Shown here: piece after piece, positions 12,301 through 61,964 of the stretch | Numbering within the stretch: position 1 is the first letter of the stretch | Layout: each line of letters begins with the position of its first letter | Origin: Macrostomum lignano | Lineage: Eukaryota | Length of the DNA: 64,000 bases | NCBI GenBank assembly: GCA_002269645.1 | Contig: NIVC01002965.1 | Coordinates: 34,491 to 98,490, forward strand | Direction: 5' to 3' | The notes under the pieces: model-generated | Told to the model about the DNA's origin: nothing | Databases searched by the model: none | Seen by the model: the letters and a program-made list of their open reading frames with translations, nothing else | Translations under genes and position numbers: made by a program

Positions 12301-13730
12301 TGAATACTTTGTCAACGGATCCTATTGCGGCGTCGGCGACTGCGGAGGTTGCACCCGGACTGACTACTTTCCAGTGTGCGGCGGCAACGTCACTTACTAT
12401 TCTCCCTGCGTCGCTGGCTGCTCGCAGGAAACCGGGCTCAGTAGCGGCTGTCAGTGCGTACCTGGCGGCTCAGTACGGCTTGGCACCTGCCAGGGCGCTT
12501 GCTACTCGAGCCTGATGGCCTACGCGTTTACTTCTATTGCTCTGGGCGCTATCCAGTGCTCGGCGCGGACGCAAGAGGCTGTCATTAACTTGCGCTGCGT
12601 GCAGCCGAGAGACAAAGCGCTGGCTCTGGCTTCAAGCAGCTTTATGTGGGGCGTCAGTTGTGAGTGATGTTTTTCTTTTTTGTTTAACAAGTTATGATAT
12701 TTGTGAGTCGTCGATAGGAGTCAAGAACTCTTCAAAAAGGGGTTCAACACAGTCTGAGGAGGCAACATCCTTCTGGGAAGTCACGTCTGAACCAAGGACT
12801 ACTCAAAAACGTTACGGAGAAAGGAAGTTTTCATTTGTTCAGCACAAAAATTGTTATTGCTTTTGATAGGGGGCAGACCCTATGTTCATCGTTTGGTATG
12901 TCTTGCCTTTTTATATAGCCCTATTGATATTCATAAAGCTTTTTGCTTATAAAATTAGGATTCTATGTTAATTCTATATCTCGCGTACATGTACGATTGT
13001 ACAAAGGACATAAATCAATAAATATTTAGAATACAAAGTTCATAAACGAAAACGTTCATAAATATCAATAGAAGTATAAAGAAAGATCAAAAGATGAACA
13101 TTGAGTCTGCCTCTTATCAAAAGTACGCAATTACAATTTTTGTGCTAAAAAAATTGAAACTTCCTATTTCTGTATTTTTTAGTAAAAATCGCCCTCTAAA
13201 ATGTGTCCAATAATTGTGGTTTCCTGTCCTTCTAATTAAGTAGTCTTTGATCATGCAGAATGGGAGGGGGCAGCGTGATTCTGATAATCCTCCAGTGAAC
13301 TGTGCATCTTTTTTTCGTGATTACGTATAATCAGATCATCTAAATCGTATCGAAAGGTCTTTTGAATATTCTTATTGATTATCTTGCTCAGTCAATGCAC
13401 CAAAACTTGCTTACAGCCTCTCTGCTACCACCGCTAATCGGCACGGTGTTCGACAACATCTGCCTCATCAGCAGCAGCGATGGTAAGCGCTCCTACTGCG
13501 AGATGTACGACCGCGTGTCGTTCAGGTACGCCTTCCATCTGTTGTCCGTGTTTGCACACGCTATCGCCTGCGTCTTCTTCTTTCTGGTTTGGTATTTCTG
13601 CGCCAAGCGCTATGGTCGAGACGGGACGGCGGCTACAGATACGGCGGCTGAGGCCAAAGTTGAGCTGGCAGAGCGAAAGAAGTCTGGTGAAAGTAGGGAA
13701 GATCCTGCAGCGGAACCGTTAAACGGTTGA
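9327..13730 (+). CDS. SLCO: Organic anion transporting polypeptide (OATP/SLCO family), 6 exons, 712 aa
   Basis: Exons 9327-10062, 10615-10977, 11209-11373, 11640-11840, 12300-12659 and 13417-13730 are all GT-AG and join in frame (2139 nt). Motifs: STFEKRF, HRPRLL, WIGAWWLGYL, and a Kazal-like PVCG..TYYSPCVAGC. Confidence 0.95.
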
Positions 13731-19017: not shown

Positions 19018-19760
19018 TATTTGAATGGGATGAGTCTTCCAAGTTAGAATGCCTGCAGGTCCTGATCAGCAGCTACCTGTGCACAGCGGTCTATTTAGTG
19101 GCTTAACTGTGAGCCGGTGCATTTTGCCAGCGCTTTTTGAGTGTCTTATTTGTGCAGCATATTTCTGGTTTTCTTTCTTATGCCTCAGATGTACTCAACA
19201 GTAAACTGGCAGCCTGAGATAGAGCTTCATTGTTCATTTGTACGAACAGAGCTGTACAGACAAAACGATGCAAGCTCACAAAAGAAGAGAATCCAAGTGC
19301 TCCAACTTACCCAGGGGTATAGTGTGTGTGTGTGTGTTCATTTTAAATTTCTTGCTACTGTCATTACTAGTATAGCCAGAACTAAAAATGCAAAAGAAGC
19401 ACATGGACATTTTTGTGGGATTTATTTGGTTTAATGCTATCATCGTACACAATAAGCTTTCTCTGCTAGCTTGCTACTAAGGACTGTTTGCTGACTATAT
19501 CTACATGTACATTTATCTCATAGAATTAAAAGCTGTATAGTCTATGGTCACAAGAGGATGCACGTCCAAGTTTTTTCATGTTTGCTGTGTTGCTGAATAT
19601 TAATTATACGAGTTACGTTTATACAAATATTCTGATCTTAAGTTTGATTCACACTGCCATCAAATAAGCCACCCAATCATACGACCGATGGACAAAGAAA
19701 TGAAATTTGATGCACGAGTCGTGTGATCACACGACTTTCGGCCTTTTAGATGCTTTTTAT

Positions 19761-29500: not shown

Positions 29501-32500
29501 CAACTCATTTTTAGTATATAGGACTAGCAATCTACGCCCCCCGTTGGGGAGCCAGAGAAATGCAATACACGTTTTTTTAATAAGCTACATGTATCCTTGA
29601 AATCTTAAAAAATCTCCTGTCAAACCTTGTAAGCCTTGACATGTCAGTAATTCCCCCCACAAGCTTTAACATATCAACTTCCCCCCTTGACATCTCAGCA
29701 ATGCCTCCAATAAGCCTTGGAAATCTAAAAATATCTGTCAACCTTCTAACCCTAACCCTAGCCTAACCCTAACCCTAACCTAACCCTAAAGCATTGAAAT
29801 TTCAGTAATTCTCTCTAAGAGTCATTATAGCACTACTACAGCATTATAGCGATTCCCTGCAAGCCTCGACATCGTAGGGATTCCCAAATGAATCTCTTAA
29901 CTTCAACATGAAGCTTCTTTTATTTTTTACATTACGCTTTTTTAATTAGCGATCCCTCCCCTGAGGAGGCATCAAATAATGTAATAAAAAGTTTTCAATA
30001 AACTACATGTAGCTTCTGACTTTAGCCTTGAAATCTCATTTATACCCTCGTGAGCCTTGACATCTCAGCTATTCCCCCGTAAGCCTTGACATGTCAGCGA
30101 TGGCCCCCATAAACCTTGAAATCTAAAAAATCCCGTTAACCTTGAAACCCGATAAAATATAACCCTCAACCAACACCTTACCTAAACCTAACTTTAACCC
30201 AACCTAAAGCCTTGAAATCTCAGCAATTCTTCTCCCCTAAGCCTTGACATTTTAGTGATTCCTTCTTTAAGAATCACAGCACTATAACGATTTCCACCAA
30301 GCTTTGACATCGTAGCAATTCCCAAATGAATCTTTTAACTTCGACATGACTTTTCTATTATGTATACATAGTGCTACTTTTATTTTTTACATGACTCTTC
30401 TTCTATCAGCGCCCCCCCGTGGCGAGCCAACAAAGAATGCAATAAAAAAATTGAGTAAAGTACATTAACTTTGAATTAGCTTCTGACTTTTGCTTTGACA
30501 TCTCAGAACCCCACCCCCCGTAATCTCAGTTATTCTCCGTGAGCCTTTACGTCTCAGTTTTTCTCCCCAGCACAGCATTATAGCTGCATTTATTTTTACA
30601 TGACACCCTTCATGTCTGACATGACGCTTCTTTTATTCTACCATGATGCTTCTTAATTTTTTAAATGACACTTTTATTAGTTTTTACATGACGCTTCTAT
30701 GATTTTTTTACATGACGCTTCTATGATTATTTACATGACGCTTCTATGATTTTTTTACATGACGCTTCTATGATTGTTTACATGACGCTTCTCTGATTTT
30801 TACATGACGCTTCTATGATTTTTTACATGACGCTTCTATGATTGTTTACGTGACGCTTCTATGATTTTTACATGACGCTTCTATGATTTTTTACATGACG
30901 CTTCTATGATTTTTACATGACGCTTCTATGATTGTTAACATGACGCTTCTATGATTTTTTTTACATGACGCTTCTATGATTGTTTACACGACGCTTCTAT
31001 GATTTTTACATGACGCTTCTATGATTGTTTACATGACGCTTCTATGATTTTTTAAATGACGCTTCTATGATTTTTATATGACGCTTCTACGATTTTTTAC
31101 ATGACGCTTCTATGATTGTTTACATGACGCTTCTATGATTTTTTATATGACGCTTCTATGATTTTTACATGACGCTTCCATGATTGTTTACATGACGCTT
31201 CTATGATTGTTTACATGACGCTTCTATGATTTTTATATGACGCTTCTACGATTTTTTACATGACGCTTCTATGATTGTTTACATGACGCTTCTATGATTG
31301 TTTACATGACGCTTCTATGATTGTTTACATGACGCTTCTATGATTTTTATATGACGCTTCTACGATTTTTTACATGACGCTTCTATGATTGTTTACATGA
31401 CGCTTCTATGATTTTTGACATGACGCTTCTATGATTTTTACATGACGCTTCCATGATTGTTTACATGACGCTTCTATGATTGTTTACATGACGCTTCTAT
31501 GATTTTTATATGACGCTTCTATGATTGTTTACATGACGCTTCTATGATTGTTTACATGACGCTTCTACGATTTTTTACATGACGCTTCTATGATTGTTTA
31601 CATGACGCTTCTATGATTGTTTACATGACGCCTCTATGATTGTTTACATGACGCTTCTATGATTTTTTACATGACGCTTCTATGATTTTTACATGACGCT
31701 TCTATGATTGTTTACACGACGCTTCTATGATTTTTACATAACGCTTCTACGATATTTTACAAGACGCTTCTCTGATTGTTTACATGACGCTTCTATGATT
31801 TTTTACATGACGCTTCTATGCTTTTTATATGACGCTTCTACGATTTTTTACATGACGCTTCTATGATTGTTTACATGACGCTTCTATGATTTTTTAAATG
31901 ACACTTCTATGATTTTATATGACACTTCTATGATTGTTTACATGACGCTTCTCTGATTGTTTACATGACGCTTCTATGATTGTTTACATGACGCTTCTAT
32001 GATTTTTTAAATGACGCTTCTATGATTTTTACATGACGCTTCCTTTTAAAAAGTCTTTTAGTTTTCCTGACGTTGAAAAGCTTTAATTAAAAAAATTATA
32101 CTCTATGAAAATTCGAATCATCGTCGCTGCATTTAGCAGTTCAGTTTGTTCACCTCTAGGCTAGCTCTCATCGTTTTGATAACATCAAATTTTTCACTTA
32201 TTTAATTCAACACTTTAAAATCCAAGCATAGAGTAAATCACACGAAGCAGTTATGACATAATCAGTTTCTCAGTCAAAACAAAATTTTCATTTTTAGTAT
32301 ATAGGATATGGTTACGCAATTTAAATCAAGTCTGGTGCTACGCTTCCACACTGCATTTTCAATTCAAGTCGGAGTTACAATTCAGTTATGATGCAATCTA
32401 TTTCAGAATCAGAATTCAACCAGTCAGTTTTTTCTCTAGCATTCTTGCAATGCATTTCAAGTCGAAAAGTTTGCTTGACCTTTGCAAAAAAGTATGTTTT

Positions 32501-32664: not shown

Positions 32665-35600
32665 CACAGACAGACCATTTTTAGTATATAGGACTAGCAA
32701 TCTTCGCCCCCCGTTGGGGGACATCTGGATAGAATCTCTGTTCTCTAAAAGTAACAAAAAGACAGCCAAATAAAGCCTTCACAAAGACAACAGAAAAACT
32801 GCTCAAATAAAGTGTAATGCAAAAAGAAATCATCCCAAGACAGCAAGCATCCCCCAGATAGCAAGCATCCCCCAGATTGCAAGCATCCCCCAGATAGCAA
32901 GCATCCCCCAGATAGCAAGCATCCCCCAAATAGCAAGCATCCCCCAGATAGCAAGCGTCCCCCAGATAGCAAGCATCCCCCAAATAGCAAGCATCCCCCA
33001 GATAGCAAGCATCCCCCAGATAGCAAGCATCCCCCAAATAGCAAGCATCCCCCAGATAGCAAGCATCCCCCCTCCCAGATAGCAAGCATCCCCCAGATAG
33101 CAAGCATCCCCAAATAGTAAGCATCCACCAGACAATAAGTAGCTAGTGCAACAATTTCCTTAGCTCTATAGTGGCTCCTTTAAAATTGGCATGACGCTTA
33201 CTTTTACGTTTGAAATTGTGTATTTTTTATGTTTGATATGGTGGCTCTTTTATGATTGGCATGGTGGCTCTCTTATGTGTGACATGGTGGCTCTTTAATG
33301 TTCGACATGGTGGCTCTTTTATGTTTGACATGATGGCTCTTTTATGTTTGGCATGGTGGCTCTCTTATGTGTGACATGGTGGCTCTTTTATGTTTGACAT
33401 GGTGGCTCTTTTATGTTTGACATGGTGGCTCTTTTATTTTTGGCATGGTGGCTCTTTAATGTTCGACATGGTGGCTCTTTTATGTTTGGCATGGTGGCTC
33501 TTTTATGTTTGACATGGTGGCTCTTTAATGTTTGACATGGTGGCTCTTTAATATTCCCCGAGATAGCAAGCATCCCCCAGATAGCAAGCATCCCCCAGAT
33601 AGCAAGCATCCCCCAGATAGGAAGCATCCCCCCTCCCGGATAGCAAGCATCCCCCAGATAGCAAGCATCCCCCCTCCCAGATAGCAAGCATCCCCCAGAT
33701 AGCAAGCATCCCCAAATAGTAAGCATCCACCAGACAATAAGTAGCTAGTGCAACAATTTCCTTAGCTCTATAGTGGCTCCTTTAAAATTGACATGACGCT
33801 TACTTTTACGTTTGAAATTGTGTATCTTTTATGTTTCACATGGTGGCTCTTTAATGTTTGACATGGTGGCTCTTTTATGTTCTACATGGTGGCTCTTTTA
33901 TGTTTGATTCGGGATTTTTTAATGTCTGACATGGGGTCTCTTTAATGTTTGACATAGTGGCTCTTTTATGTTTGACATGGTGCTCTTTAATGTTCGACAT
34001 GGTGGCTCTTTAATGTTTGACATGGTGGCTCTTTAATGTTCGACATGGTGGCTCTTTATTGTTCGACATGGTGGCTCTTTTATGCTTGACATGGTGGCTC
34101 TTTAATGTTCGACATGGTGGCTCTTTATTGTTCGACATGGTGGCTCTTTAATGGTTGACATTGTGGCTCTTTAATGATTGAAATGGTGGCTCTTTTATGT
34201 TCGACATGGTGGTTCTTTTATGTTCGACATGGTGGCTCTTTTATGTTTGACATGGTAGCTCTTTTATGTTTGACATGGAGTCACATATATGTTTGACATG
34301 GTGGCTCTTTTATGTTTGACATGGTGGCTCTTTAATGTTTGACGTAATGGCTCTTTAATGTTCTTCATGGTGGCTCTTTTATGTTTGACATGGTGGCTCT
34401 TTAATGTTTGACATGATGGCTCTTTTATGTTTGACATGGTGGCACCTTAATGTAATGATGGCTCTTTATTATTTGACATGGTGGCTCCTAAATGTTTGAC
34501 ATGGTGGCTCTTTAATGTTTGACATGGTGGCTCTATAATGTTCGACATGGTGGCTCTTTAATGTTAGACATGGTGGCTCCTAAATGTTTGACATGGTGGC
34601 TCTTTAATGTTTGACATGGTGGCTCTATAATGTTCGACATGGTGGCTCTTTAATGTTAGACATGGTGGCTGTTTAATTTTTGACATGGTGCTCTTTAATG
34701 TTCGATATGGTGGTCCCTTTATGCTTGACATGGTGGCTCTTCAATGTTGGACATGTTGGTCCTTTTATGTTTGGCATGGTGGCTCTTTAATGTTTGACAT
34801 GGTGGCTCTTTATGTTCGACATGGTGGCTCTTTAATGTTAGACATGGTGGCTGTTTAATTTTTGACATGGTGCTCTTTAATGTTTGACATGGTGGTCCTT
34901 TTATGTTTGACATGGTGGCTCTTTAGTGTTTGACATGGTGGCTCTTTAATGTTCGACATGGTGGCCCTTTAATGTTTGACATGGTGGCTCTTTACTGTTT
35001 GACATGAAGTCACATATATGTTTGACATGGTGGCTCTTTAATGTTTGACATGGAGTCACATACATGTTGGACATGGGGCTCTTGAATGTTCGACATGGTG
35101 GCTCTTTAATGTTTGACATAGTGGCTCTTTAATGTTCGACATGGTGGCTCTTTAATGTTAGACATGGTGGCTCTTTAATGTTCGATATAGTGGCTCTTTT
35201 AATTTTGACTTTGTGCTTTTTTGTGTTTAGCATTTCGTGTTTTTAAGGTGTTTTAATAAAAAATCTTTTTGCACTACTAAGATTCGAACCCAGGTCGCTG
35301 CATTAGCAGTCCAGTCTGTTCGCATCTATGCTATCTCTCGTCAATTGGAGAACATGAATTGTGGCCCTTATAATTCAATTCTTACAGCAAGTCAATTAGA
35401 GTAAAAAGTTATGACATAATCAATTTCTCAGTCAGCCAGTATCAGTGTCAATTAAGTTAGCAATATTGTTACGCAATTTAAATCAAGTTTTGTGTGCATT
35501 TCTTCGGCACTGTTTTCAACTGGTTGTGATGTAATCTTTATCACAATTGGAATTCAGTCAGTCAGTTTTGTCTCTAGCATTCTTACAATGCATTTCAGGT

Positions 35601-39439: not shown

Positions 39440-40010
39440 TAAGGACGAAGAGGTTTGCTGAAGGATCAATGGGAGGTTCTTTGGTGTATCAAGGGGTCCT
39501 TTGGAGGATCAAGAAGTCCGCTTGAGGATCAAGAGGTCCGCTAGATGATCATGGGGTCCTTTGGAGGATCATGAGGTCCTTTGGAGGATCATGGGGTCCT
39601 TTGGAGGATCATGAGGTCCTTTGGAGGATCAAGAAGTCCGCTTGAGGATCAAGAGGTCCGCTAGATGATCATGGGGTCCTTTGGAGGATCATGGGGTCCT
39701 TTGGAGGATCATGAGGTCCTTTGGAGGATCATGAGGTCCTTTAGAGGATCATGGGGTCCTTTGGAGGATAAGGATGTCTTGGAGGATCGTGGGGTCCTCT
39801 GTAGGATCAAGGAGTCCTTTAGGAGATCAAAGGGGTCGTTTGGAGGATCAAGGGCTTCCTGTAGGATCAAAGGGCCCTTCGAACAATCAAGAGGTCTTCT
39901 GTGGAACCAAGGGGCTACTTGTAGAATCAAGGAGTCCTTTGGAGGAACATGGGTCCTTTAGAGGATCTTGGGGTCATTTGGAGGATTAAGGGGTCCTTTG
40001 GTGGATCTAG
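39440..40010. repeat. ~20-bp minisatellite (GGAGGATCATGGGGTCCTTT)
   Basis: Periodic and degenerating at both ends; a ~100-bp block is duplicated at ~39500 and ~39600. Confidence 0.9.
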
Positions 40011-40639
40011 GGGTGCTATCGAGGCTTCAGTATATACCAAGGTCAAAGCAAACGCTAAATACAATAGTGCAGAACCTAACCTTCATTTTCCACTTTCGAA
40101 CAATAAGACGCACGTCCACACTCAGCCAAGCTAACTAGGGTAGCTAGACAGACTGCCAGCTGGCACCAGTTCAGCTGCCGCTCTCGCATTTCTGATTTCA
40201 AAATTGTTAGCTCCAAAATCCAAAGCAGAAACGAATACCCTGCTTCTCAATGCTCAACGCTTTACAGTGTAGAAACCAGTTAGCCTTATGACCTGTAGAG
40301 TGAGACAGGGCTTTGATAACAGAGCATGGCATATCTAGGCACAAAAATCTGTAAGTCAATTGCAGTGCTGAGCTCTTATCAGTTGAGCTGCCCGCTGAAA
40401 AGTTTCACTTAAGTCACATGCAATTGACCAGCCAAAGTGGGCTCATGACTGTTAGCGCGCTGGACTCTAAACAGTTTTTTTTATTTCTAACTTAGCTAGA
40501 ACCGACTTTCACTGCTTTTCTTAGAAAGCCGTATGCGACCACTGATGCTTTATCAGGATTTCTAGATCCAATATGGTGGTCTGTACGGAAGAGTTCATTT
40601 CAACCCGTTCTGAGTTTACTCTTTCCTATCTCTTCTTGG

Positions 40640-41800
40640 TAATCCACTCAAGTCTCTTTCCCTCCCTCTCCCTCTCCCCCGCTCCACCACTACTTCTTTC
40701 CCTATCTCTCCTCACTCCTCTCCCTCTCCCTCTCCCTCTCCCTCTCTCTCCCCCATCCCTTCTACCCCTCTCTCCTTCTCCCCCTCTCCTTATCCCTCTC
40801 TCTTGTTCCTCTTCCCAACCTGCCTTTTCTACTTCTCTTCCTCCTTTCCTCTCTCTCTTCTCTCTCTATTCTCTCTCTCCCTCTCTCCCTTTCTCCCTCT
40901 TTCCCGTCTACCCTCTCAGGAAGAATATAAAATATTCCAAACATCTACAATTCGCTTAAGCATCTGCGCTACCGCGCCAGTGCTTAAGGGTTTTACGACT
41001 CTTTCCCTCTCTCCCCCTCTCTCATCTCTCCTCTTTCCCTCTCTCCCCCTCTCTCATCTCTCCTCTCTCCCTCTCCCCCCTCTCTCATCTCTCCTCTCTC
41101 CCTCTCTCCCCCTCTCTCATCTCTCCTCTCTCCCTCTCTCCCCCTCTCTCATCTCTCCTCTCTCCCTCCCTCCCCCTCTCATCTCTCCTCTCTCCCTCTC
41201 TCTCCCTCTCTCATCTTTCCTCTCTCCCTCTCTCCCCCTCTCTCATCTCTCCTCTCTCCCTCTCTCCCCTCTCTCATCTCTCCTCTCTCCCTCTCCCCCT
41301 CTCTCATCTCTCCTCTTTCCCTCTCTCCCCCTCTCTCATCTCTCCTCTTTCCCTCTCTCCCCCTCTCTCATCTCTCCTCTCTCCCTCTCTCCCCTCTCTC
41401 ATCTCTCCTCTCTCCCTCTCTCCCCCTCTCTCATCTCTCCTCTCTCCCTCTCTCCCCCTCTCATCTCTCCTCTCTCCCTCTCTCTCCCTCTCTCATCTTT
41501 CCTCTCTCCCTCTCTCCCCCTCTCTCATCTCTCCTATTTCCCTCTCTCCCCCTCTCTCATCTCTCCTATTTCCCTCTCTCCCCCTCTCTCCCATCTCTCC
41601 TCTCTCCCTCTCCCCCTCTCTCCCTCTCCCCCCTCTCTCTCTCCCCCTCTCTCTCATCTCTCCTCTCTCCCTCTCCCCTCTCTCCGTCTCTCCATCCTCT
41701 CCCCTTTCTTCCTTCTCTTCTATCTTTTTTCGGTCTTCCCGTCTTTAACCTCTATTTGCATCTCTCCCCTCTCCCACCTTTCTCTTTCTTTCTCTCCTCT
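40640..41800. repeat. ~1.15-kb CT-rich homopyrimidine tract/minisatellite
   Basis: CTCTCATCTCTCCTCTCTCCCTCTCTCCC-type units; nearly purine-free from ~41000 to 41700. Confidence 0.95.
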
Positions 41801-42012
41801 TTCATCTTATTCTCAATATTCTTCCCCAGCTCCCCAATTTGCCGAATAGTCACTGTCCTACCGAAAAGTCAATTAAGTTGTAAAGCAAACCGATGAACCA
41901 ATCAGAATGTCGTGATAATAAAGTCCAGATATAAATACGATGGATAGAATAGCTGATAAAGCGAACACGGTTTTCGATAGCGAAAATTAACAATTGGAAT
42001 TACGAGAACCTT

Positions 42013-43253
42013 ATGGATATCTGCACAAATTCATTGCTGTTATTTATTAATCTGCTTCTTGTATCACCATACTCTGTTGGTGAGTTCTGCTTCATAGGTG
42101 TGTTTATAAAATGGGACAGATTTTTGACAAGTATTGATTTTATCTTCAGGTGAAGAACAATTTCTCCGATGCAGTGGACAAATAAGGGACTTTATTAGTC
42201 CGCCGTGTCATCAGTGCAGCTGTCGAGTGAGTGAGACGCTTGTTGATGTCTTCGGTTGGTAGGAGTTTCTCTCTCTAGAGAATTCTGATTTTTTGACCGA
42301 GTACGGAAAAGCCCGTTATTTTATTAATGACTAGACAATCTGATTTGCTTTTTTCCATTGATGAGTAGATGAGTTCTATTAGTGAGTAGTTGAGCTACAT
42401 TGGTGAGTAGATGAGTTCTATTGGTCAGTAGATGAGTTCTATTGGTAAGTAGATGAGTTCTATTGGTGAGTAGATGAGTTCTATTGGTGAGTAGATGAGT
42501 TCTATTGGTGAGTAGATGAGTTCTATTGGTGAGTAGATGAGTTCTATTGGTTAGTAGATGAGTTCTATTGGTTAGTACTCGTAGATGAGTTCTATTGGTG
42601 AGTAGATGAGTGCCTTTGATGAGTAAATAAGCTCTATTGATGATTTTATTGGTCAGTCGATGCCTGATTAAGTTGATGAAAAGTGAAATTCATGCATGGA
42701 TAGATGAGTACGATCTATATTGATTTGTTTGATCAGTGGACAAGTTAGATTTTTGAGAACATTAAATATCTTAGTAGCGTGATATTTGACTCCATTTGTC
42801 AGCAGAAAACCAGAATACGCGTGACTTGCTATTTGATTTTGTTCCCAAATTGACTCGTTATGCAGAACGGCATTTACTCCTGTTGGCTGGCTCAGTGCCC
42901 CAGTGTGGACACCTCTTGCTACGTCACTCAGAATGACGTCTGCTGCGAGAACTGTCGCTCCTGCCAACTTCGCCAGCCTGGCAACCGGCAGCTGCTGCTT
43001 CATCGTGAGCTGGTCCAGCGGCCTCAATCGTCAGATGCGTGCGAGATCAGCCACTGCGTGGCAGGTGTTGTCACCGAGTTCCGCAGGCTGTGCCATCCGC
43101 CATGCTCACCAGAGTATCAGCTGAGGTTGCCGGGCCAGTGTTGCCCCAGGTCTGTCCTCTGTATAATAAACCGGGATGTAAAAGTACGGGAGACTCAGGA
43201 ACGTTGGGAAATTATTTAGTTGCTTTTTTATTTATATAGTTTGTTAGTCAGTC

Positions 43254-43300
<47 letters not shown>

Positions 43301-43358
43301 CAGTTAGTTAGTTAGTTAGTCAGTCAGTCAGTCAGTCAGTCAGTTAGTTAGTTAATTC

Positions 43359-43399
<41 letters not shown>

Positions 43400-43400
43400 C

Positions 43401-43468
<68 letters not shown>

Positions 43469-43517
43469 CAGTCAGTCAGTCAGTTAGTTAGTTAGTTAAT
43501 TAGTTAGTTAGTTAGTC

Positions 43518-43588
<71 letters not shown>

Positions 43589-43719
43589 CAGTCAGTCAGT
43601 CAGTTAGTTAGTTAGTTAGTTAGTTAATTAGTTAGTTAGTTAATTAGTTAGTTAGTTAGTCAGTTAGTTAGTTAGTTAGTTAGTCAGTCAGTCAGTCAGT
43701 CAGTCAGTTAGTTAGTTAA

Positions 43720-43756
<37 letters not shown>

Positions 43757-43832
43757 CAGTCAGTCAGTCAGTCAGTCAGTTAGTTAGTTAATTAGTTAGT
43801 TAGTTAATTAGTTAGTTAGTTAGTTAGTTAGC

Positions 43833-43885
<53 letters not shown>

Positions 43886-43886
43886 G

Positions 43887-43920
<34 letters not shown>

Positions 43921-43951
43921 CAGTCAGTCAGTCAGTTAGTTAGTTAGTTAA

Positions 43952-43999
<48 letters not shown>

Positions 44000-44000
44000 C

Positions 44001-44098
<98 letters not shown>

Positions 44099-46784
44099 GT
44101 TTGTTTGTTAGTTTGTTTGTTAGTTTGTTTGTTAGTTTGTTAGTTTGTTTGTTTCGAGTAATTACATTAAAAAAGCAAGTACAAGTCAGATGCATTTCTC
44201 CAACAGCTGCTTCGGTTGCTCGCTAAAGCAGTTGCCGATGCTGCCAGAAGAAATCGTGAGACCATTCGACGACCAATCAATCGTGTGCCGGTGCTCGGGT
44301 GGCACTCTGGCCTGCCACAAGGATGTCTGTCCCGTGCCCAACTGCCCACGTGAGGTGCAACAGTTGGACGGCCAGTGCATGAGTTGCAGAAGTGAGTTTT
44401 TGTCTTTCGCATTGGGTAAAATATTATTTGCCTTCACAATCTCTAAGCATTTTACTTAATTGACTTAGCTGCAGTAGATCCGGGCATCGGGGAGCGGGAA
44501 GGCGCTGGTTCCTGTTCCGAAAACACCTGGGCGATCACGGGCAGCTGACGAAGAGCCCAGAGGCTCGAAACCGCTGCTAGCCCTTATTCAAATTTTTTTA
44601 AACATGCCGTGACCTCTCTTCTCTCTCTCTACCTCTCTCCCTCTCTCTCTCCCTCTCTCCCTTCTCTCCCTCCCTTCTCTTTCTCTATATCTCTATGTCT
44701 CTTTCATGACATGCGCTCAAAGATTCATAAGTCATGACATAATTGTTTTCGAAACGAGTAATTAGTAGTTTTTAAGGCGTAAATTTTTAAAAGGGACACC
44801 TGCCTAAATTATTTAACCAGTTTGAATTCCCAGTTGAAATTTCGAACTTCTGAATGACGAAGAACTTGCGTTACAAGGGTCGGCATAGTGCTACAAAAGT
44901 TTTTGTTTATTTTTCGAATTTTACAGAACAATTTGGCGAAGACCGCCGTCTCAGGCGCATGACCAGCTTGGATCAGTGCCTGTTCGAAGGCTCCGCGTAC
45001 GTCAATGGCACCAGCTGGCGGCAGGACGCCTGCACTTATTGCTCATGCCAGGTAGTTCGAAGACACAATTAGCGTGACTGATTTCTGAAAGTAAATTTTG
45101 GCATCTGACAAAAATGTCGAAATTTACGCGGGAAAACATTTTTGCTACTTCTTTCTTCAGGCACTTGCTAAGGTGGTACAGGCAATCATGTGAAATAATC
45201 CCAGATTTCCTTGACGCAACCCACAGGCGGGCACAGTTCATTGTCGACGAACCAACTGTCCGATTCTGACCTGTCCGGAGTCGCAACAGCTGCTGCCAAG
45301 TCCGTCAGAGTGTTGCAAAGTCTGCAGCAGTGGCCGCAGCCAGCTGGACTGCGGCGACTCGAGCGGAAGACGCTATCGGGTGAGCTGCTCTGTAATCCTA
45401 AATTCTTGCCACATTAATTTGGGGCTAAATTGGAATTTCGGCTTGGCTCTGCTCGTGCTATTAACGCCCTTGAGGCCAAACCCTCAAGGCACAGTGAAGG
45501 CACAGTGAAGTGTACATGCCTAACGATAATTAAATCTAGGGCCGCTGTGCACTCCTGTCTGTGCGTATGACTGCGTACGTATCCGCGCGCTTGTGTGCCT
45601 CCTGCTCAGTGGAGACGGCGGAATGGGCAGCAATGCCTCTCGCCGGTGGTGTGACATTGTCGCTTAAAGTCCGTTACGGTGGACACAGCCCCTGCCTCAA
45701 AGAAAGCTTTGACATTATATCAATTTTTAAGCTTACAGATTGAGGTTGCAGCCTAGTGGTCAAAGCGTCGGACTCAAGCCTTGAAGGTCCGGGGTTCGAT
45801 TCCCGATCCCACTAAAACATTTGTGTCCTTGAGCAAGACACTTAATTCTGCATTGCTTCAGTTCACCCGGCTGTAAAATGGGTGCCAGCATTAGCTGGGG
45901 AAATTAGTGTTGTATGTGGCGACCCCCCAGTCCTTGGACTGACCTTGGAGCTGTCGGTTTGACATCTGCCCAATTAGGGCATGCGTAATCAATTATTATC
46001 AACTTTTAAACTTCAGAATGGCCAGGTGTTTTGTCTCAAGTTAGCTATTCTACACCTCACAATATAACAACCGAACGTAAAACAGTCTAACAATCTAAAC
46101 TTGCAACAAATTAGCCTAGATCTGAATGGATTTTTGCCATAGACGATATAACGATAAGAGGAACCGAAGTTTCTTTGGAAAATAGGTACATCCATGATTA
46201 ATCAGAGCGATTCTCCTGTCTAAGTCAGAAAATCTGCTTGATTGGCGGCCAGTCAAAGGTTTGTTGCCCAGACAAAATCAGCTGTCGGCAAAGTCACCTG
46301 CCGATGAACTGTGGCGAGAGAAAAAGAAAGTTATTACTCGTCAGCTTTCCAATATGGTCAGTGGTATAGGCATCTAACTGATGGACCACATAGAAACGTT
46401 TATTATCTACTAGCGACTTTCTCCTTTGACTAGGAATGGGGGACCGGTTTAGACAGTTGGGTAGAAAGTTATTGTCCAAGATTTATAGTTGCCTAGCAGA
46501 AATAATAAACCAAATGCGAGAGGGAAAGAGAAAACTCGGACAGATCTAGATGAATCTAGTTCACTAGTTCAAGGGTATGCAAAGAGATTAGGGCTGTGCT
46601 TCTCAGATTGCGCGTAAGGTTCTGATTTGAACCTCGATTCCACAGTGCTGGTACAGTTGTGGCATCTTGGATTTCGTCATGTTAATTGGAAACGCTGCGA
46701 AAATTGTAACATTCTTGCGGATTTTCTGCCACAGCTTCGCTTTGGACCAGTAAATCATCTGAGTGATGATTATGGTGATGATGG

Positions 46785-46836
<52 letters not shown>

Positions 46837-49229
46837 GATAATGATGATAATAATGATGATGATGATGTTGATAATGAAGAAGAAGATGATCATGTCTTTG
46901 ATGGATCTTTGGCCTTGCAGTCCTCATTGTTTCTCAGGCCAGAGTCAATAGTAACCAGAATGAACTTTCGAGGAATTAAAAAAAGTCTAGAGTCAATTAT
47001 TTGCAAAAAATTGCAAAACTGAGTTATAAACTAATACTCCGTGTTTTTGGTGGGGCCGAACACTTCAGATTCTCGTTCAAGGTCTCCATGTCATAATCAA
47101 GAGTCAATCAGATGATGCGTATATCAAATACTCAAAAACTCGAAGTGCACCCATGAGCCCAACACGCTTTCCTGACATAAACTTCCGCTTTATTCTAAAT
47201 CTCTCCCAGCACGGCGAGACGTGGCGCCCCGACAAGTGCTCACTGTGCTCCTGCCACTCTGGCCAGATGTCCTGCCGTCAGCTGGACTGTCTGGCATCGA
47301 CGGACGGTCAGCAACGCAACGACACCTACGCGTCGGCTGTCTGCGTCTGGCTGCCAAGTCGGCAGAGGCTGCGAACTTTCGACGCTCGATCGGCCGAGAT
47401 GCTTCAAGGCTGTCGGTGAGCATAGTAATGCTGTCGAACCAACGTCAGCTCTACCTTCCAATTCCCTCCCGCAACTGGAAATGTCTCTACTACAGTGTAC
47501 GTCCTCGGTCAACGAAGAATTTAAAGTTTACACCCTTTACACCCTTTTCATTCCTAACATACATAAGCTCGTACATACTGCTCGTGCTTGCGCTACTTGT
47601 GCCACTTTTTTAGTTCATTTTCTGACGGCTCTACAGGACGGAGAGAAAGTGAAGTATTTAGCTCTTGCAGTGGTTAAAGACTGTAGAAGCCGTAAACATA
47701 CTCATACTCTTACTTCTAGCTTTTTATTCTACTGCTAGCTTTCCTAATTTTGTATCTACGGCAGAAGCGTAGCAGAGGGAATTGAGGGTTGGTGTTAAAG
47801 CCCCTGGTGCTAAAGCTCCTTGTGTTAATGCCCCTAGCGATGTCCCTGCACGATTAAAATTTTGGCTACGTCCTCGATTTAAGGGTATCTCGATACTAAG
47901 ATTGGCACGTTGAATATTTGATATTTTGCCATTTTTAGTATATAGGAGGATGTGAAACCCAAGACTCCAAACAAAAATTGACAGGTACACCCTAGCAAGA
48001 CGCAGGCGAACAGGCTTATCAATCAGATTCACAGCGGGCGGTCGAGTACCCGCCACGCTCAGCATCCGATGGGGCGCTGGCAGGCGGCTCACGCTCGGCC
48101 CCGAACTGCAGCCTCGCCTGAACCGTCGCTGGGTCAGCCGAGCTGTCCTAGCAACTGGACTCGCACGTATTGATCCAACACTCTCTGAGCCGTTGGTTGC
48201 TATGGAAATCGTTTCCGGACACGCGTTGGTCTCGCTGTCTGGAGTGTCCGGAGCTTCTAGTCGGCTTGCAATTCTATGGGACGGCGCTGACTATCTGGAA
48301 CTGCAGGCGAGGCCGCGCAGTCTCGCTAATCAGTTCAAGGGGCTGTGCGAGACGGCCAAGCGAAGACGACGGCGTCCAGACAGGTCTTGGCGTCGGGGTA
48401 TCTGTCGAGCTGGGAACAGTCGCGGTAGCAGGAGAGGCAGTCGACGAAGACGGTTGCTAGCGACCTGCCCAGAGGTTCGCGGTCGACCAAAACAACGACG
48501 TCGTTTAAGGCGATGGCGTAGGCAGCATTGCGGAGCGCTTCGGAGACTGCGTTGCTCGGATCGAGTGCAGGTGCAGTTGTACTTCAAGTGAGAAAGTCTT
48601 CTAGATAATGAATTTATCTTTGAAATATGTTCGCGACCATTGCGGGCAAAGGGGTGTGCTATTAACCTGAGTTATTAACCGGGTCCAGGTATTGCAATGG
48701 TAATTTAGTTTGAAGCTGCTCTTTGAAAATTTTTTAACGTCCGGGTTACATAGACATTGTTCTGGGCCCAAACAATTGACCTCTCAAATCATTGCAAAAA
48801 TACTAATATAACATCATCTGAATGCACATGGTCCTATCAATCACTACCCAAAGCTGGTGCACCGAACGTCTGTGCGCCTGTCGCAACCAGCGTAGCCCAG
48901 AGCGCTGTCTGTGTCCGGTGGTTCGAGCCGCCCTGCGAGACTGCGCCAACGTTGGCATTCCCGTCCTAGCCATGGACCCGGCTCTGTCGCGCCCGTGTTC
49001 TGAAGAGCAAGGCGGTGATCAGCTTTGCCCGCCGCAATTTCGCTACTCTAATTGCGTTTGCCGCGATCTTCGTCAGTGTGGTCGACAGAGAGCGCGACGG
49101 GAACGCTGCAGTGACTGCGTCGGAGGCTGCGTGTGCGACAGGTCGGCTCGGTGGCTCCACCGCGGTCGATGCCTGAAACGGCGTCGGGATTGCCCGCGCT
49201 ACTCGCTGATGCCAAGCGAACGAGATTGA
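42013..49229 (+). CDS. BMPER: BMP-binding endothelial regulator / Crossveinless-2 orthologue (signal peptide, 5 VWC, VWD, C8, TIL), 9 exons, 677 aa
   Basis: Exons 42013-42079, 42150-42226, 42866-43149, 44207-44391, 44927-45051, 45227-45379, 47210-47415, 48027-48587 and 48854-49229 join in frame (2034 nt). CR2 CVAGVVTE parallels BMPER CQEGVVTE. VWD motifs RTFD and WDG..YLEL..GLC; C8 LCAC..RCLCP..RDC; terminal TIL. The exon 7/8 junction is the least certain. Confidence 0.85.
42365..42620. repeat. 21-bp minisatellite (GATGAGTTCTATTGGTGAGTA) in BMPER intron 2
   Basis: About 11 tandem copies. Confidence 0.93.
43245..44150. repeat. ~900-bp (TTAG)n/(TCAG)n microsatellite grading into (TTTG)n, BMPER intron 3
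   Basis: Direct inspection. Confidence 0.98.
44539..44583 (+). ncRNA. Minimal hammerhead-ribozyme-like motif (Penelope-type), probably inactive
   Basis: GGGCAG-CTGACGA-A-GAGCC CAGA GGCTC-GAAAC-CGCTG-CTAGCCC: core, perfect 5-bp stem II and a bulged stem I. The cleavage triplet would be CUG and stem III is mismatched. Confidence 0.45.
45471..45672 (+). repeat. Dispersed repeat family X, copy 4
   Basis: GAGGCCAAACCCTCAAGGCACAGTGAAG...GTACATGCCTAACGATAA...GTCGCTTAAAGT; colinear with the 38420-38622 copy. Confidence 0.8.
45742..45990 (+). mobile_element. tRNA-derived SINE with CORE-like domain, copy 2
   Basis: A-box CAGCCTAGTGGTC, B-box GGTTCGATTCC, then TGTGTCCTTGAGCAAGACACTTAATTCTGCATTGCTTCAGTTCACCCGGCTGTAAAATGGG; 3' part shared with the 19761-20027 copy. 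Confidence 0.88.
46766..46890. repeat. (GAT)n trinucleotide microsatellite in BMPER intron 6
   Basis: Direct inspection; source of the poly-D, poly-H, poly-I and poly-M ORFs. Confidence 0.95.
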
Positions 49230-50301
49230 GTCGCACCTGGCGGCTAATATTCACCTGTTTGTTGTTGACTGAGACGTCAATTCGAGAGCATGGAGGGATG
49301 GGTAGATAAGCGTAGAGGCAAGACAATTGATGAAAATTTTAATAGGGACGACTTACTATTAAGCAAAATTAATAACTTTCGAAGAGGACATCCAGATAAC
49401 TTTAAAAATGAGAAAGGGACCGTCAGTCTACCTCTCCTCTGATTGCTGACATCATTTCACTAATTTTCCGCTAGCATGGCACATTACTAATGAGTAGTCA
49501 GTTGCTAACAATTGTATTGTCCCTCTCCCTCATTCCGAAGGATCATATAAGTGTTTTTGAAGGTACACAGAAAAAAAAACATTAAAACGGGTTCCAAGGT
49601 TTGGATTGTCGTTAATTACAACTCAACGCCCAATGTAATATTTGCATGCTTTGCTAATTGAAATACAATAAATATAAGAAGGGTAAGGGGTAAGCGCTGA
49701 AGTTTTCAGTTTTTGTAAACATTCAGTCAAATTTAAGATTTATTGTACATTTCAATGGATGCTACATGCAACCGGCAAGAATTCCATAGTCTGAAGTAGG
49801 TGATTAATATCCAGATTCTGGCATTGGCTAACAAAGGAAGTGATGGTCCATCTTGTAGTGACCACGTGTACGGTTAAGCTGCTCTCTTGCCTTTCCTGTA
49901 TGCGGACTACCGGCATAGTGCTGGTGGAGAGAGTTCGCAACAACTTCGTTAACTGAATAGTTAATTTGTTACGAGCTATTTTAGGCAATCTGTGTTGCCC
50001 CCTAAGCGCGGGGTCGCGCTGGCCTATGTCGATCTTTTTTCTTGCTGTCTCTCCTTGGGCCTCTCTGGTATCTATTCGCCATTTTCTTTCGAAACAGATT
50101 AGTTGGTAATTGTATCTATCGGCAACCAGAGACGCATAGGCGATTAGGGGTAGGAGGTTAGTGCAGTTAAAGCTTGCTTTTTGATAGACAGTCGACCAAA
50201 AGCAGACAGTTCAAACTAGATAAGAAGGAGCAGACAGCCAGTTTGAATGAGAACTCTGCTTTTCTCAGGAGACAAAACTCACAGTCGATAAGGATCAAAA
50301 A

Positions 50302-51618: not shown

Positions 51619-53641
51619 ATGGCTGACCTTTCCGACCACCCGATGCAGCACTCACACCAGGCATCGTATGATATCGAATGGAGCAGGGGTTATTGCGACT
51701 TTACCAACTCAGCTTCCGTGCCCCTGATGCAGCAGGACATTCTGTACAACGGGGCGACAGACAGTCCAGTCGGGGAAACTTTCGACGGCTCAGAATTTGC
51801 CTATCAGCAGCTGCAAGAACAGCAGCAGCAGCAGTTGGACTGGGCAATGTCCCTGGCCGATCTAGCCGACAATACTAGGCGATATTCAGCTATTATTGAA
51901 CTTTGCAAGAAGTCCGACATCATACCGGATTTGGCCTGTCTGCTGTGGTGCACTCCAGGTGTGCTGGCTATGCTGGTGATGGAGACTGTTCGGCTGTATC
52001 CGGACATTCATCCGCCGCACCTGGACAGCCAAGGTGTGCATCTGCTCTGCTCTGTGGCGGCACTGCAGCAGCGTCTGGTCATTGACAGGCGCACCCGACA
52101 GCCGTTCCTGGAGTCCGGCACTCTGCGCCTCTTCTTCCCTTTCCTGGGCGTTGTAGGGAAAACTCGCGACACTGAGCACCTGAGAATCTGCACCTTGTCG
52201 CTAATTCTGACCGTCTGCCAGCGTCAGGAGCCGCAGCAGTTGTTGCAGCACCTACAGCCAACCAGAGGCGACCTCCTCCGTCTAGTCACCTTCTGTCTGG
52301 GCGAGTGCATCTCCGAGGTTGGCCGGTCGATGGCGCTAAAGATCCTCATGAGCTTTCTAGGCTGTGACGATGTGTTGAACTACCTGTGCCACAGTTACGA
52401 CCGCTTCAGAGAGCTGCTGTGGGCGATGGGACGATTGGTAATCCGGCTAGAGAGAAAGTTTCTGTCAGATTTTAGCGACCAGTCTAAACGAGTTTTCAAG
52501 TAAGTCAATCCATTAGAGATTGAATTCTTTCTTATCGGTTTTAGGATGGCTTTGAATTTTAAATCAAAGCTTACGGGGGGAATAGTTGCTGTCTCAATGC
52601 TCAATGCTCACGGGGGAATAACTGAGATGTCAAGGCTAAAGTCAGAAGCTAAATGTAGTTTATTCAAAACTTTTTATCAAATTATTTGTTGGCTCCTCAC
52701 GGGGGTCGCTGATCAAAGAAGCGTCATGTTGAAGTTAAGAGATTCATTTTGGAGTCACTACGATGTCGACGGCTTGGAGGGAATCGCTATAATGATGTAA
52801 TGCTAATGCTATTCTCTTGGGGAGAATTACTGAAATTTCAATGCTTTAGGGTTAGGGTTAAGGTTAGAAGGTTGACAGGAGATTTTTTAAGATTTCAAGA
52901 CTTATTGGGGTCATCGCTGAGATGTTGAGGGGGGAAAGTTGATATTTTAAGGATTATGGGGGAGAATTGCTGAGATGTCAAGGCTTACAAGGGATTGCTG
53001 AGGCTGCTGCAATGAGACGCTACATGTAGTTTATTAAAAACTTTTACTGCATTTTTTGGCTCCCCAACGGGGGGGGGGGCGCTGACTGCTAGTCATGCAC
53101 TGATGTTACAACCTCCAGTATCATCAGAGGGTGTGTTGATTTTACCTTCAGTCTCAACGTAGATTCCCAGCAGACCCATCATCGTATTTTAATCCTCATC
53201 AGATACGTCATTACCACATTTATCCGAATCTGCGATCACGACCTCGGCCGGGAAGCCCTGATGCACTGCATCCCTGTGGAACTGTTCGACGGTCGGTTCT
53301 GCAGCATCTTCGCCAACGACGAACAAGTGGAGCGCTGGCTGCAGCAGTTGCACGCCAGGATCTACGGCTATCCAGCGGCCTCCATCTGTGCCAGGAACAA
53401 ACTCAGCTTGTCACCATGCGGTGACAGCAACAATAACAGCACTAGCGGGCCTGAGAACGCCAATACCAGCGGCACCACTGTCTCTAGCTGGTGTCAGCAG
53501 ACGGCAGCTCCGGGACCTTTGACGCTGGAGCAGCCACCGCAGCAGCAGCTGACGCAACCTGCCGCCCCACTTCCTGCTGGTGTCGAATCGTCACCTGATC
53601 CGCTCTTCCTGCTCACTGCAGGTGCAGGACGATTCCGCTGA
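51619..53641 (+). CDS. CNOT9: Divergent CNOT9/Rcd1 (RQCD1)-like armadillo protein, 2 exons, 456 aa
   Basis: Exons 51619-52499 (donor GTAAGT, phase 2) and 53152-53641. Segments ELCKK..IPDLACLLW, LYPDIHPPHL, KTRDTEHLRICTL, LNYLCHSYDRF and REALMHCIPVELFDGRF..WLQQL parallel Rcd1 ELSKK..VPDLAPMLW, IYPSINPPTL, KTRPFEYLRLTSL, LAYICQTYERF and REALRQCLPDQLKD..WLAQL (reference recalled from memory). Confidence 0.85.
52570..53092 (+). mobile_element. 5'-truncated Helitron relic (unit-B family) in the CNOT9-like intron
   Basis: Ends with the CCCCAACGGGG hairpin, then GCTGACTGCTAG|T. The body is the reverse-complement homologue of ~29524-30080, including TTAGGGTTAGGG. Confidence 0.8.
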
Positions 53642-57635: not shown

Positions 57636-58425
57636 ACACGATGCCCACCAAGAGACGGGGCGCCCACCAAGAGACGGGGGCGCCCACCAAGAGACGGGGC
57701 GCCCACCAAGAGACAGGGGCGCCCACCAAGAGACAGGGGCGCCCACCTAGAGACACTGCGCCTACGAAAAAACAGGGGCGCCCACCAAGAGACGGGGCGC
57801 CCACCAAGAAACAGGGGCGCCCACGAAAAGACGGGGCGCGCACCAAGAGACAGGGGCGCCCACCAAGAGACAGGGGCGCCCACCTAGAGACAATGCGCCC
57901 ACCAAGAAACAGGGGCGCCCACCAAGAGACAGGGGCGCCCACCTAGAGACAATGCGCCCACCAAGAAACAGGGGCGCCCACCAAGAGACAGGGGCGCCCA
58001 CCTAGAGACAATGCGCCCACCAAGAAACAGGGGCGCCCACCAAGAGACAGGGGCGCCCACCTAGAGACAATGCGCCCACCAAGAAACAGGGGCGCCCACC
58101 AAGAGACGGAGCGCCCACCAAGAGACAGGGGCGCCCACCTAGAGACAATGCGCCCACCAAGAAACAGGGGCGCCCACCAAGAGACGGAGCGCCCACCAAG
58201 AGACAGGGGCGCCCACCAAGAGACGGGGCGCCCACCTAGAGACAATGCGCCCACCAAGAAACAGGGGCGCCCACCAAGAGACAGGGGCGCCCACCTAGAG
58301 ACAATGCGCCCACCAAGAAACAGGGGCGCCCACCAAGAGACAGGGGCGCCCACCTAGAGACAATGCGCCCACCAAGAAACAGGGGCGCCCACCAAGAGAC
58401 GGAGCGCCCACCAAGAGACACTAGT
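57636..58425. repeat. 19-20-bp GC-rich minisatellite (GGGGCGCCCACCAAGAGACA) with a 59-bp higher-order unit
   Basis: A trimer of variants (AAGAAACA, AAGAGACA, CTAGAGACAATG) repeats every 59 bp around 57900-58400. Confidence 0.95.
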
Positions 58426-60229: not shown

Positions 60230-61430
60230 TCAGAAACCGATAGCAAACGACAGAAATTAATAAGAGACGACACCGAGCGACCGACATCAAACGACACCAG
60301 ACGACACCAACCGACAACAGACGACAACAAACGACAACAGGCGACAACTAACGACACTAACCGACCACAGACGACAACAAACGACAACAGGCGACAACTA
60401 ACGACACTAACCGACCACAGACGACACAAACGACAACAGACGACACCACGACAACAGACAACAGACGAAAACAGGCGACACTAAACTACAACAGAGAACA
60501 GACGACAACAGACGACAACAGACGACACCAAACGACAACAGACGACACCAAACGACAACAGACGACACCAACCGACACCAGACGACACCAACCGACACCA
60601 AACGACACCAAACGACAACAGACGACACCAACCGACAACAGACGACACCAAACGACAACAGACGACACCAAACGACAACAGACGACACCAAACGACAACA
60701 GACGACACCAAACGACAACAGACGACACCAAGCGACAACAGACGACAACAAACGACAACAGGCGACAACTAACGACACTAACCGACCACAGACGACACCA
60801 AACGACAACAGACGACACCACGACAACAGACAACAGACGAAAACAGGCGACACTAAACTACAACAGAGAACAGACGACAACAGACGACAACAGACGACAC
60901 CAAACGACAACAGACGACACCAAACGACAACAGACGACACCAACCGACACCAGACGACACCAACCGACACCAGACGACACCAAACGACAACAGACGACAC
61001 CAAACGACAACAGACGACACCAAACGACAACAGACGACACCAAACGACAACAGACGACACCAAGCGACAACAGACGACACCAACCGACAACAGACGACAC
61101 CAAACGACAGCAAACGAAATCAAACGACACCAGACGACACCAAACGACAACAGACGACACCAAACGACAACAGACGACACCAACCGACAACAGACGACAC
61201 CAAACGACAACAGACGACACCAAACGACAACAGACGACACCAAACGACAACAGACGACACCAAACGACAACAGACGACACCAAACGACAACAGACGACAC
61301 CAAACGACAACAGACGACACCAAACGACAACAGACGACACCAACCGACAACAGACGACACCAACCGACAACAGACAACACTAAACTACAACAGACAACAG
61401 ACGACAACAGACGACACCAAAAGACGCTAA
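60230..61430. repeat. 20-bp minisatellite built from 10-mers (ACGACACCAA + ACGACAACAG)
   Basis: Direct inspection; an interrupting block recurs at ~60450-60500 and ~60820-60870. Confidence 0.96.
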
Positions 61431-61471
61431 GCTTATTTTATAGCCATTAAGCTTTGCCAGCCGCCTCAATC

Positions 61472-61736
61472 ATGGACACTAACGACAGCGCCCCTTTGGA
61501 AGCGTCGAACATGTGGGAGCTCAAGCAGACACCGCCAATGCTTGCATTTCTCTCGCTGGCCTACACCGTGGTATTCACTCTGTCAATCATCGGTAACGTT
61601 GTTGTCATAGCAACCGTCTACAGGATACCCTCGATGCACACGGCGATTAATTATTTTATCTGCAATTTGAGCACAGCAGACACACTGGTTGCTATTTTCT
61701 GCCTGCCGTTGAATCTGATCTCGAGCACCTTTACCA
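61472..61736 (+). CDS. Class A GPCR, neuropeptide-receptor-like (SIFamide/NPFF-type sequence style), first coding exon
   Basis: MDTNDS...TM1 YTVVFTLSIIGNVVV, ICL1/TM2 MHTAINYFICNLSTADTLVAIFCLP; phase-1 donor GTGAGA at 61737. Later exons not found in the window. Confidence 0.88.
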
Positions 61737-61964
61737 GTGAGATTAGACTCGATCATGCTGTTCTGTTTTTCATCTGTAAAATTAACTGGTTTGCTTTTAG
61801 TTGATTGAATTTAAAAGTAACCGGGTTCTGAGCGAGCTACTTAGCGTACATAGATAGAGAAATTTTGGGGTTAGGTCATATCCAGGCTCATGGGTTCGAT
61901 TCCCACATTCGCCCCATTTATTTGGAAACTCGGGTCTGGGGCTGGTTTGAGTGATCGAATAGGT

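Follow-up and report, generated by a model that had tools for sequence, protein, structure and literature searches.

BMPER and its Drosophila counterpart Crossveinless-2 (Cv-2) are modulators of bone morphogenetic protein (BMP) signaling whose VWD domain opens on a GDPH motif. Autocleavage at this motif is conserved in the family from arthropods to vertebrates, and mutation of the human motif leads to skeletal disease. In human BMPER, the N-terminal fragment is diffusible and the stronger BMP inhibitor, the C-terminal region binds cell-surface heparan sulfate, and the cysteine pair C364-C497 tethers the cleavage products to each other (PMC6456722). The role of the autocleavage is debated, and it may affect the release of a diffusible inhibitory N-terminal fragment as against retention at the cell surface; the P370L substitution in the human motif blocks autocleavage while still allowing secretion (PMC6456722). 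Here, we describe a BMPER/Cv-2 gene of the flatworm Macrostomum lignano in which the motif has been replaced. It lies on the + strand of a stretch of 64,000 nucleotides (contig NIVC01002965.1, positions 34,491 to 98,490, of assembly GCA_002269645.1), which we call the window and to which all coordinates refer. Literature searches returned no paper on a flatworm Cv-2 or BMPER.

The gene (42013-49229) is modeled as nine exons forming a 691-codon open reading frame (ORF), with a candidate signal peptide and an end at the family's usual C terminus. We consider it the probable reading that this is an apparently intact gene for a secreted BMPER/Cv-2 protein, with its GDPH replaced and its C-terminal half remodeled, which would work as a single-chain BMP modulator. 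The altered motif falls in the stretch AVCVWLPSRQRLRTFD (47336-47383, +; amino acids 340-355), within exon 7, and the + strand translation around the VWD start reads ...CRQLDCLASTDGQQRNDTYASAVCVWLPSRQRLRTFDARSAEMLQGC. In a 14-sequence alignment, this stretch stands opposite the BMPER pattern C-[TSAKV]-[VA]-[FY]-G-D-P-H-Y-x-T-[FY]-D, so that F/Y-G-D-P-H-Y has become W-L-P-S-R-Q-R-L, with one residue gained and LPSRQRL (47351-47371) occupying the position of GDPH. Three flanking features that are invariant in the alignment, namely the cysteine preceding the motif, the T-F-D following it, and the cysteine after that, are all retained in the flatworm protein, where Cys342 is the counterpart of human Cys364. 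The replacement is a plain sequence difference for which chance is no issue. With no Asp-Pro at the motif position, acid-catalyzed autocleavage there is impossible.

The initial annotation of this DNA had placed an altered VWD start within 47330-47415, inside exon 7 and clear of one uncertain exon junction. Both points are borne out: the exon spans 47210-47415, and the nine-exon model gives the same numbering. The background on which that annotation drew, cleavage at the Asp-Pro of GDPH with consequences for the behavior of BMPER, is likewise found in the literature (PMC6456722).

It is highly improbable that the missing motif is an artifact of the gene model or the assembly, with another exon or frame restoring GDPH or an indel error hiding it. 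GDPH occurs in none of the six frames of the 64-kb window, and the VWD-start part of a broad BMPER hidden Markov model (HMM) matches no ORF in the window besides the modeled gene. An alternative exon containing GDPH, which the initial annotation had named as a way for its claim to fail, is thereby excluded within the window. All significant matches of the broad BMPER HMM in the window coincide with the modeled exons and are collinear with them, and the motif lies mid-exon between in-frame conserved residues on both sides (C...TFD...C). The artifact finds some support in exon 8, where the +1 frame of 48340-48458 is acidic and loosely recalls the BMPER DD...F..SW region. This resemblance, and the arginine run that follows GLC in the modeled frame, had led us to suspect a compensated frameshift or assembly error in that exon. 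The suspicion was ruled out: the ORF in the alternative frame (48152-48457) does not match the profile, whereas in the modeled frame W, WDG, GLC, SW, and the cysteine after them stay in register with BMPER orthologs, and this frame is the sole open one (no stops in 200 codons, vs 7 and 5 in the other frames). In shuffled sequences, the probability of an open frame was 0.001 for exon 8, and the whole coding sequence was never open.

We place the gene in the BMPER/Cv-2 family because its protein aligns end to end with the family profile, because BMPER orthologs are its best matches in a mixed protein pool, and because of how its first VWC domain ranks in the PDB; on this evidence, it belongs to the family by descent. 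A human BMPER sequence served solely as the seed of a database search, in which authentic BMPER proteins were retrieved with identities reaching 100%. Against a profile of eight vertebrate BMPERs (677 HMM positions), the spliced protein gives one alignment, over HMM positions 54-675, at 129 bits. An exhaustive search with the vertebrate profile returned invertebrate proteins that their sources label BMPER-like or crossveinless, from a clam, a nemertean, an ascidian, a barnacle, a crayfish, a tardigrade, a horseshoe crab, a crinoid, and the nemertodermatid Meara. For BLASTP, every fetched protein went into one pool, more than 100 of them giants with multiple VWD or VWC domains: the best 30 matches in this pool are all BMPER orthologs (residues ~8-682, E ~1e-49, protostomes first), and the multi-VWD giants are not among the best matches. 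VWC1 alone, the domain by which family members bind BMP ligands, has as its best PDB match the VWC1 of Crossveinless 2 (3bk3), weak at E=0.27, and a PDB sequence search with the full model returned generic VWC proteins (chordin, NELL) and nothing else.

Pfam recognizes VWC four times in the spliced protein (E=9.5e-16), together with a borderline TILa; it gives no match to VWD, C8, or TIL on either the spliced protein or single ORF pieces, and none to VWD even at E<=10. By alignment, VWC1-4 are complete, and VWC5 retains its first subdomain (six cysteines) without the CP...CCPxC part. The VWD region scores 10.6 bits against the family profile, with a shuffle maximum of 1.1, and has C...TFD...C, W, WDG, GLC, and SW...C in register. 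Kielin/chordin-like protein (KCP) or another multi-VWC/VWD protein was considered as an identity for the gene and ruled out by the five VWC domains, the one VWD-C8-TIL unit, and the end at TIL. The domain order read from the alignment, five VWC and then the putative VWD, C8, and TIL, is also that of human BMPER, in Drosophila Cv-2, and in the clam (P0179), nemertean (P0208), barnacle (P0224), and Meara (P0238) proteins; the flatworm protein has 691 amino acids, compared with ~640-720 in BMPER/Cv-2 orthologs. Apart from P0261 (described below), every other fetched BMPER-like sequence that covers the site has C-x-[VA]-[FY]-GDPHY-x-T-[FY]-D. Among these sequences, GDPH loss in the BMPER family is rare but not unique.

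The motif is only part of what has changed. Over VWC1-5, the flatworm protein shares an identity of mostly 0.31-0.35 with those of other phyla, falling to 0.27 with Meara, compared with 0.33-0.37 among those phyla. Over VWD-C8-TIL, the identity is 0.22-0.26, compared with 0.37-0.44 among the others. This C-terminal half adds 15.5 profile bits (shuffle maximum, 1.4) and consists of 21% Arg and 1% Lys, with an isoelectric point of 11.5 and a net charge of +52, vs +3 to +31 for the same half of orthologs. The second VWC5 subdomain is lost, and with it the counterparts of human C342, C353, C354, and C357; in the VWD, human C394 and C494 are without counterparts, two cysteines that would be disulfide partners by the disulfide map of the von Willebrand factor D3 domain. 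These are the real cysteine losses, and they come in even-numbered sets. Of the 73 conserved cysteine columns, ~64 are still occupied, among them those of C8 and the full set of ten in TIL, and the cysteine count of the mature protein is even (66). The human pair C364-C497, which straddles the cleavage site, corresponds to Cys342 and Cys487 in the flatworm, and both columns are invariant; by analogy with the human protein (PMC6456722), Cys342 and Cys487 may be assumed to pair. As read from the alignment, the GDPH loss is one element of a lineage-specific remodeling of the C-terminal half, not an isolated motif change. The initial annotation, which proposed that a BMPER ortholog had lost GDPH, was right about the family and about the absent motif, but this is not a clean loss in a canonical ortholog, since the whole VWD-C8-TIL half is derived.

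Several observations weigh against our reading of an intact, remodeled BMPER/Cv-2 gene. Single-sequence AlphaFold2 prediction of exon 8 was uninformative (predicted local distance difference test score, 38), and the folding of the derived module is judged from the cysteine register alone, Pfam being blind to VWD, C8, and TIL. GC content at third codon positions (GC3) is 0.55-0.62 in exons 8-9, vs 0.71-0.75 in exons 3-5 and 7, with exon 6 at 0.63; the lower GC3 in exons 8-9 could mean relaxed constraint. A word-based protein search with 284 amino acids of exact VWC-region sequence found no similar protein, though M. lignano proteins are in the database. The gene is thus absent from those M. lignano protein sets and appears unannotated there. 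Searches with contiguous ORFs from exon 7, from exon 9, and from a neighboring Rcd1-like gene found no database record.

The weaker GC3, the missing database protein, and a C-terminal half beyond Pfam recognition would all suit a decaying or non-functional gene copy, in which GDPH, the second VWC5 subdomain, and the Pfam-detectable VWD, C8, and TIL were lost under relaxed selection. Such a copy would hardly be expected to keep 691 codons free of stops and frameshifts, with modeled splice sites that are all canonical and a probability of staying open that is ~0 in shuffles. Nor does decay account for conserved cysteines that stand in exact register, the ten of TIL included, and that have been lost in even-numbered sets; divergence this deep without a disabling mutation is unexpected under neutrality. 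An intact ORF, canonical splicing, and a kept disulfide scaffold at such divergence argue for a functional, constrained protein rather than a pseudogene, and we regard decay as improbable.

Also weighing against a loss in the ortholog itself is the possibility that the gene is a divergent neo- or subfunctionalized paralog. A canonical, GDPH-bearing BMPER/Cv-2 would then be kept elsewhere in M. lignano or in flatworms, and the ortholog proper would have lost nothing. Duplication has precedent, with two copies of cv2 in bryozoans and three in a phoronid among other spiralians (PMC13121700), and hidden polyploidy is reported for M. lignano (PMC10468722). One half of the protein has moreover accelerated asymmetrically, as might be expected of a released duplicate. 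On the other hand, the 64 kb hold no second BMPER-like locus, the divergence of the VWC half from other phyla does not exceed that seen among those phyla, and the word-based search with the VWC region matched no protein, M. lignano proteomes included, although a strongly divergent paralog would escape it. We consider a paralog unlikely, if less so than a decaying copy.

For a remodeled BMPER/Cv-2 protein, the most likely mode of action would be the following. The conserved N-terminal VWC domains would bind BMP ligand, and the polybasic C-terminal module would anchor the protein on heparan sulfate proteoglycans of the cell surface or matrix. The result would be a single-chain BMP-binding modulator acting at short range, from which autocleavage would release no diffusible N-terminal fragment. 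For platyhelminths, loss of chordin and a divergent BMP toolkit are reported (PMC13121700), and these changes could relax or redirect constraint on Cv-2.

A swapped mechanism is conceivable, though we hold it to be doubtful. Here, a furin-type convertase would cut at RRRR (amino acids 371-374), ~25 residues downstream of the lost motif and inside the Cys342-Cys487 loop, remaking two disulfide-tethered chains under the control of an enzyme, and the poly-arginine module would be an unusually strong heparan sulfate anchor suited to a chordin-less BMP system. R-x-[KR]-R has eight matches in the protein, seven of them in the C-terminal half and RRRR among these, where a rough calculation from composition expects ~3.5. 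Since about half of the count is expected by chance at 21% Arg, it provides no evidence of a selected furin site, and convertase cleavage is speculative. The initial annotation had envisaged a BMP modulator that is either constitutively uncleaved or protease-switched: the first holds for GDPH autocleavage, which the sequence makes impossible, and the second is a possibility only. The relevance to dorsoventral patterning that the annotation also proposed would likewise be hypothetical.

In building the gene model, eight exons were joined by reading the sequence, with phases checked by script, and exon 1 came from an upstream scan. All eight modeled introns are GT-AG with consistent phases, intron 1 being a candidate. 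Exons have 58%-64% GC, vs 29%-43% in introns. The choice of exon 1 was made among upstream ATG-initiated hydrophobic ORFs with a phase-1 donor, taking the best-consensus donor of a few candidates. The resulting candidate exon (42013-42079, on the + strand like all that follow) encodes MDICTNSLLLFINLLLVSPYSVG, a putative signal peptide, and comprises the start codon, the putative signal peptide MDICTNSLLLFINLLLVSPYSV, and the initial base of a Gly codon that the intron divides; its consensus phase-1 donor, TTG/GTGAGT, is in fitting phase, and a 70-nt intron separates it from exon 2. A TATAAA at 41930-41935 (+), which precedes the candidate start codon by ~80 nt, is a possible promoter element, and a CT-rich array fills 40999-41718 just upstream of this putative promoter.

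Exon 2 (42150-42226) encodes the N-terminal part of VWC1 (EEQFLRCSGQIRDFISPPCHQCSCR); it aligns to BMPER VWC1 and has canonical splice sites in consistent phase. The rest of VWC1 and VWC2, with its GVVTE motif, follow in exon 3 (42866-43149; broad BMPER HMM E=5e-13, HMM 48-146), and the end of VWC2 (CCPSCFGC) and VWC3 in exon 4 (44207-44391; E=6.5e-11, HMM 131-203), both supported by their splice sites as well. The intron between them, intron 3, contains a (TAGT)n repeat that fills 43237-44153. VWC4 is split between exon 5 (44927-45051), which carries a linker and the first half (Pfam VWC positions 1-26, with an HMM match), and exon 6 (45227-45379), which carries the second half and the start of VWC5 (Pfam VWC positions 26-57); splice sites support both. 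The junction that had been called uncertain, 45379/47210, joins ...LDCGDSSGRRYR to HGETWRPDKCSLCSC, giving the first half of VWC5. Intron 6 contains a GAT/GAC-type simple repeat (46760-46900), which would translate into poly-Asp from the + strand and into poly-His or poly-Ile from the - strand; the BMPER profile does not match this repeat, which does not belong to the gene.

Exon 7 (47210-47415), identified by Pfam VWC and TILa matches and by alignment, holds the first subdomain of VWC5, a linker in place of the second, and the VWD start. Its acceptor is ctcccag/ and its donor CG/gtgagc, and its reading phase is compatible with both neighboring exons. Exon 8 (47985-48587), placed by its only open frame and a weak profile match, encodes the remainder of the VWD, which is derived and rich in Arg, and the first part of C8, with RRRR at 47998-48009, ILWDGAD at 48271-48291, KGLCE with Cys487 at 48337-48351, and DRSWRRG at 48379-48399. 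Exon 9 (48854-49229; broad BMPER HMM E=1.1e-6, HMM 564-664) contributes the C8 and TIL cysteine scaffold and the stop codon. A possible polyadenylation signal, AATAAA, lies at 49667-49672 (+), and ATTAAA also occurs at 49581.

The window holds other genes as well. Upstream, several exons of an SLCO/OATP organic-anion transporter gene span 9225-13727 (+), with a Kazal-like loop at 12182-12664, and an ASC/ENaC amiloride-sensitive sodium channel gene spans 16270-19065 (-), with a long ORF at 16270-17865. The 532-amino-acid exon of the channel gene is 98% identical to the M. lignano UniRef entry A0A1I8IC31 (named "PBPe domain-containing protein" by its source), which assigns the window to that flatworm or a very close relative; with another M. 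lignano protein, the exon shares 55% identity. Downstream, at 51619-52500 and 53093-53638 (+), lies a strongly divergent Rcd1/CNOT9-like gene (Pfam Rcd1 E=1.5e-31 and 2.9e-9) that carries a long N-terminal extension of unrelated sequence and has a tail rich in Gln; because CNOT9 is normally very conserved, this divergent copy looks like a fast-evolving paralog. We also found an ORF with a PAN/apple domain at 21005-21292 (-; E=4e-4) and an exon of a rhodopsin-family G-protein-coupled receptor at 61451-61801 (+; Pfam 7tm_1 E=6e-11). Fragments of reverse-transcriptase ORFs (Pfam RVT_1) in several frames of a GC-rich region, ~3500-8600 (-), are probably a decayed non-long-terminal-repeat retrotransposon. 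Minisatellites with 17-23-bp or multiple periods are unusually many, for example at 1345-2080, 28172-28942, 30619-32042, 33803-35209, 39475-40014, 57643-58420, and 60282-61425. Rfam matched nothing in the window.

A motif-less member of this family in a flatworm that is capable of transgenesis, from a phylum reported to be without chordin (PMC13121700), amounts to a natural experiment, one that could reveal the purpose of the cleavage and the extent to which VWD-C8-TIL can drift while the BMP-binding VWC array is conserved. We judge its value to be moderate, as this is one divergent gene of a fast-evolving lineage and at least one other independent loss exists.

Compared with other BMPER/Cv-2 proteins, the flatworm protein shares the CCPxCxGC junctions, GVVTE in VWC2, WDG, GLC, SW, and the C8/TIL cysteines; it differs from them in being without GDPH, the second VWC5 subdomain (four cysteines), and the counterparts of human C394 and C494. 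VWD domains without the motif exist elsewhere: the D domains of von Willebrand factor naturally lack GDPH, and the VWD fold does not need it. MUC2, FCGBP, SUSD2, and RGM are VWD proteins that are cleaved at GDPH. For FCGBP and SUSD2, the literature describes GDPH cleavage with the fragments held together by disulfides. All of these, von Willebrand factor included, belong to other protein families and are not BMP regulators.

Within the BMPER family, predicted 575-amino-acid mammalian isoforms (P0014 and ~75 others) are, like the flatworm protein, without GDPH. These isoforms arise by a predicted skip of ~110 residues that removes most of the N-terminal VWD (joining …CCPICTE to SLEISWDGDSF…), not by replacement, and are computational models that stand beside a canonical isoform; if they are real, vertebrates also make a motif-less BMPER by splicing. 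P0261, a BMPER-like protein from a transcript-like contig of a Logan assembly, whose nearest relative is a BMPER-like protein of the horseshoe crab Tachypleus (42% identity), also has its motif destroyed, with GDSG in the stretch CTAFGDSGYKTFD, and it is also without the FSWTK motif. Unlike the flatworm protein, P0261 has an otherwise conventional VWD-C8-TIL, with C-terminal-half identities to other phyla of 0.33-0.37; it represents an independent GDPH loss, in what is probably a chelicerate. The nearest experimental analog is human BMPER P370L (GDPH to GDLH), the diaphanospondylodysostosis variant, which is likewise unable to autocleave yet is secreted (PMC6456722). There, however, one residue is substituted in a protein that is canonical in all other respects, and the change behaves as disease-causing, whereas in the flatworm the motif has been replaced outright and the surrounding module has evolved along with it.

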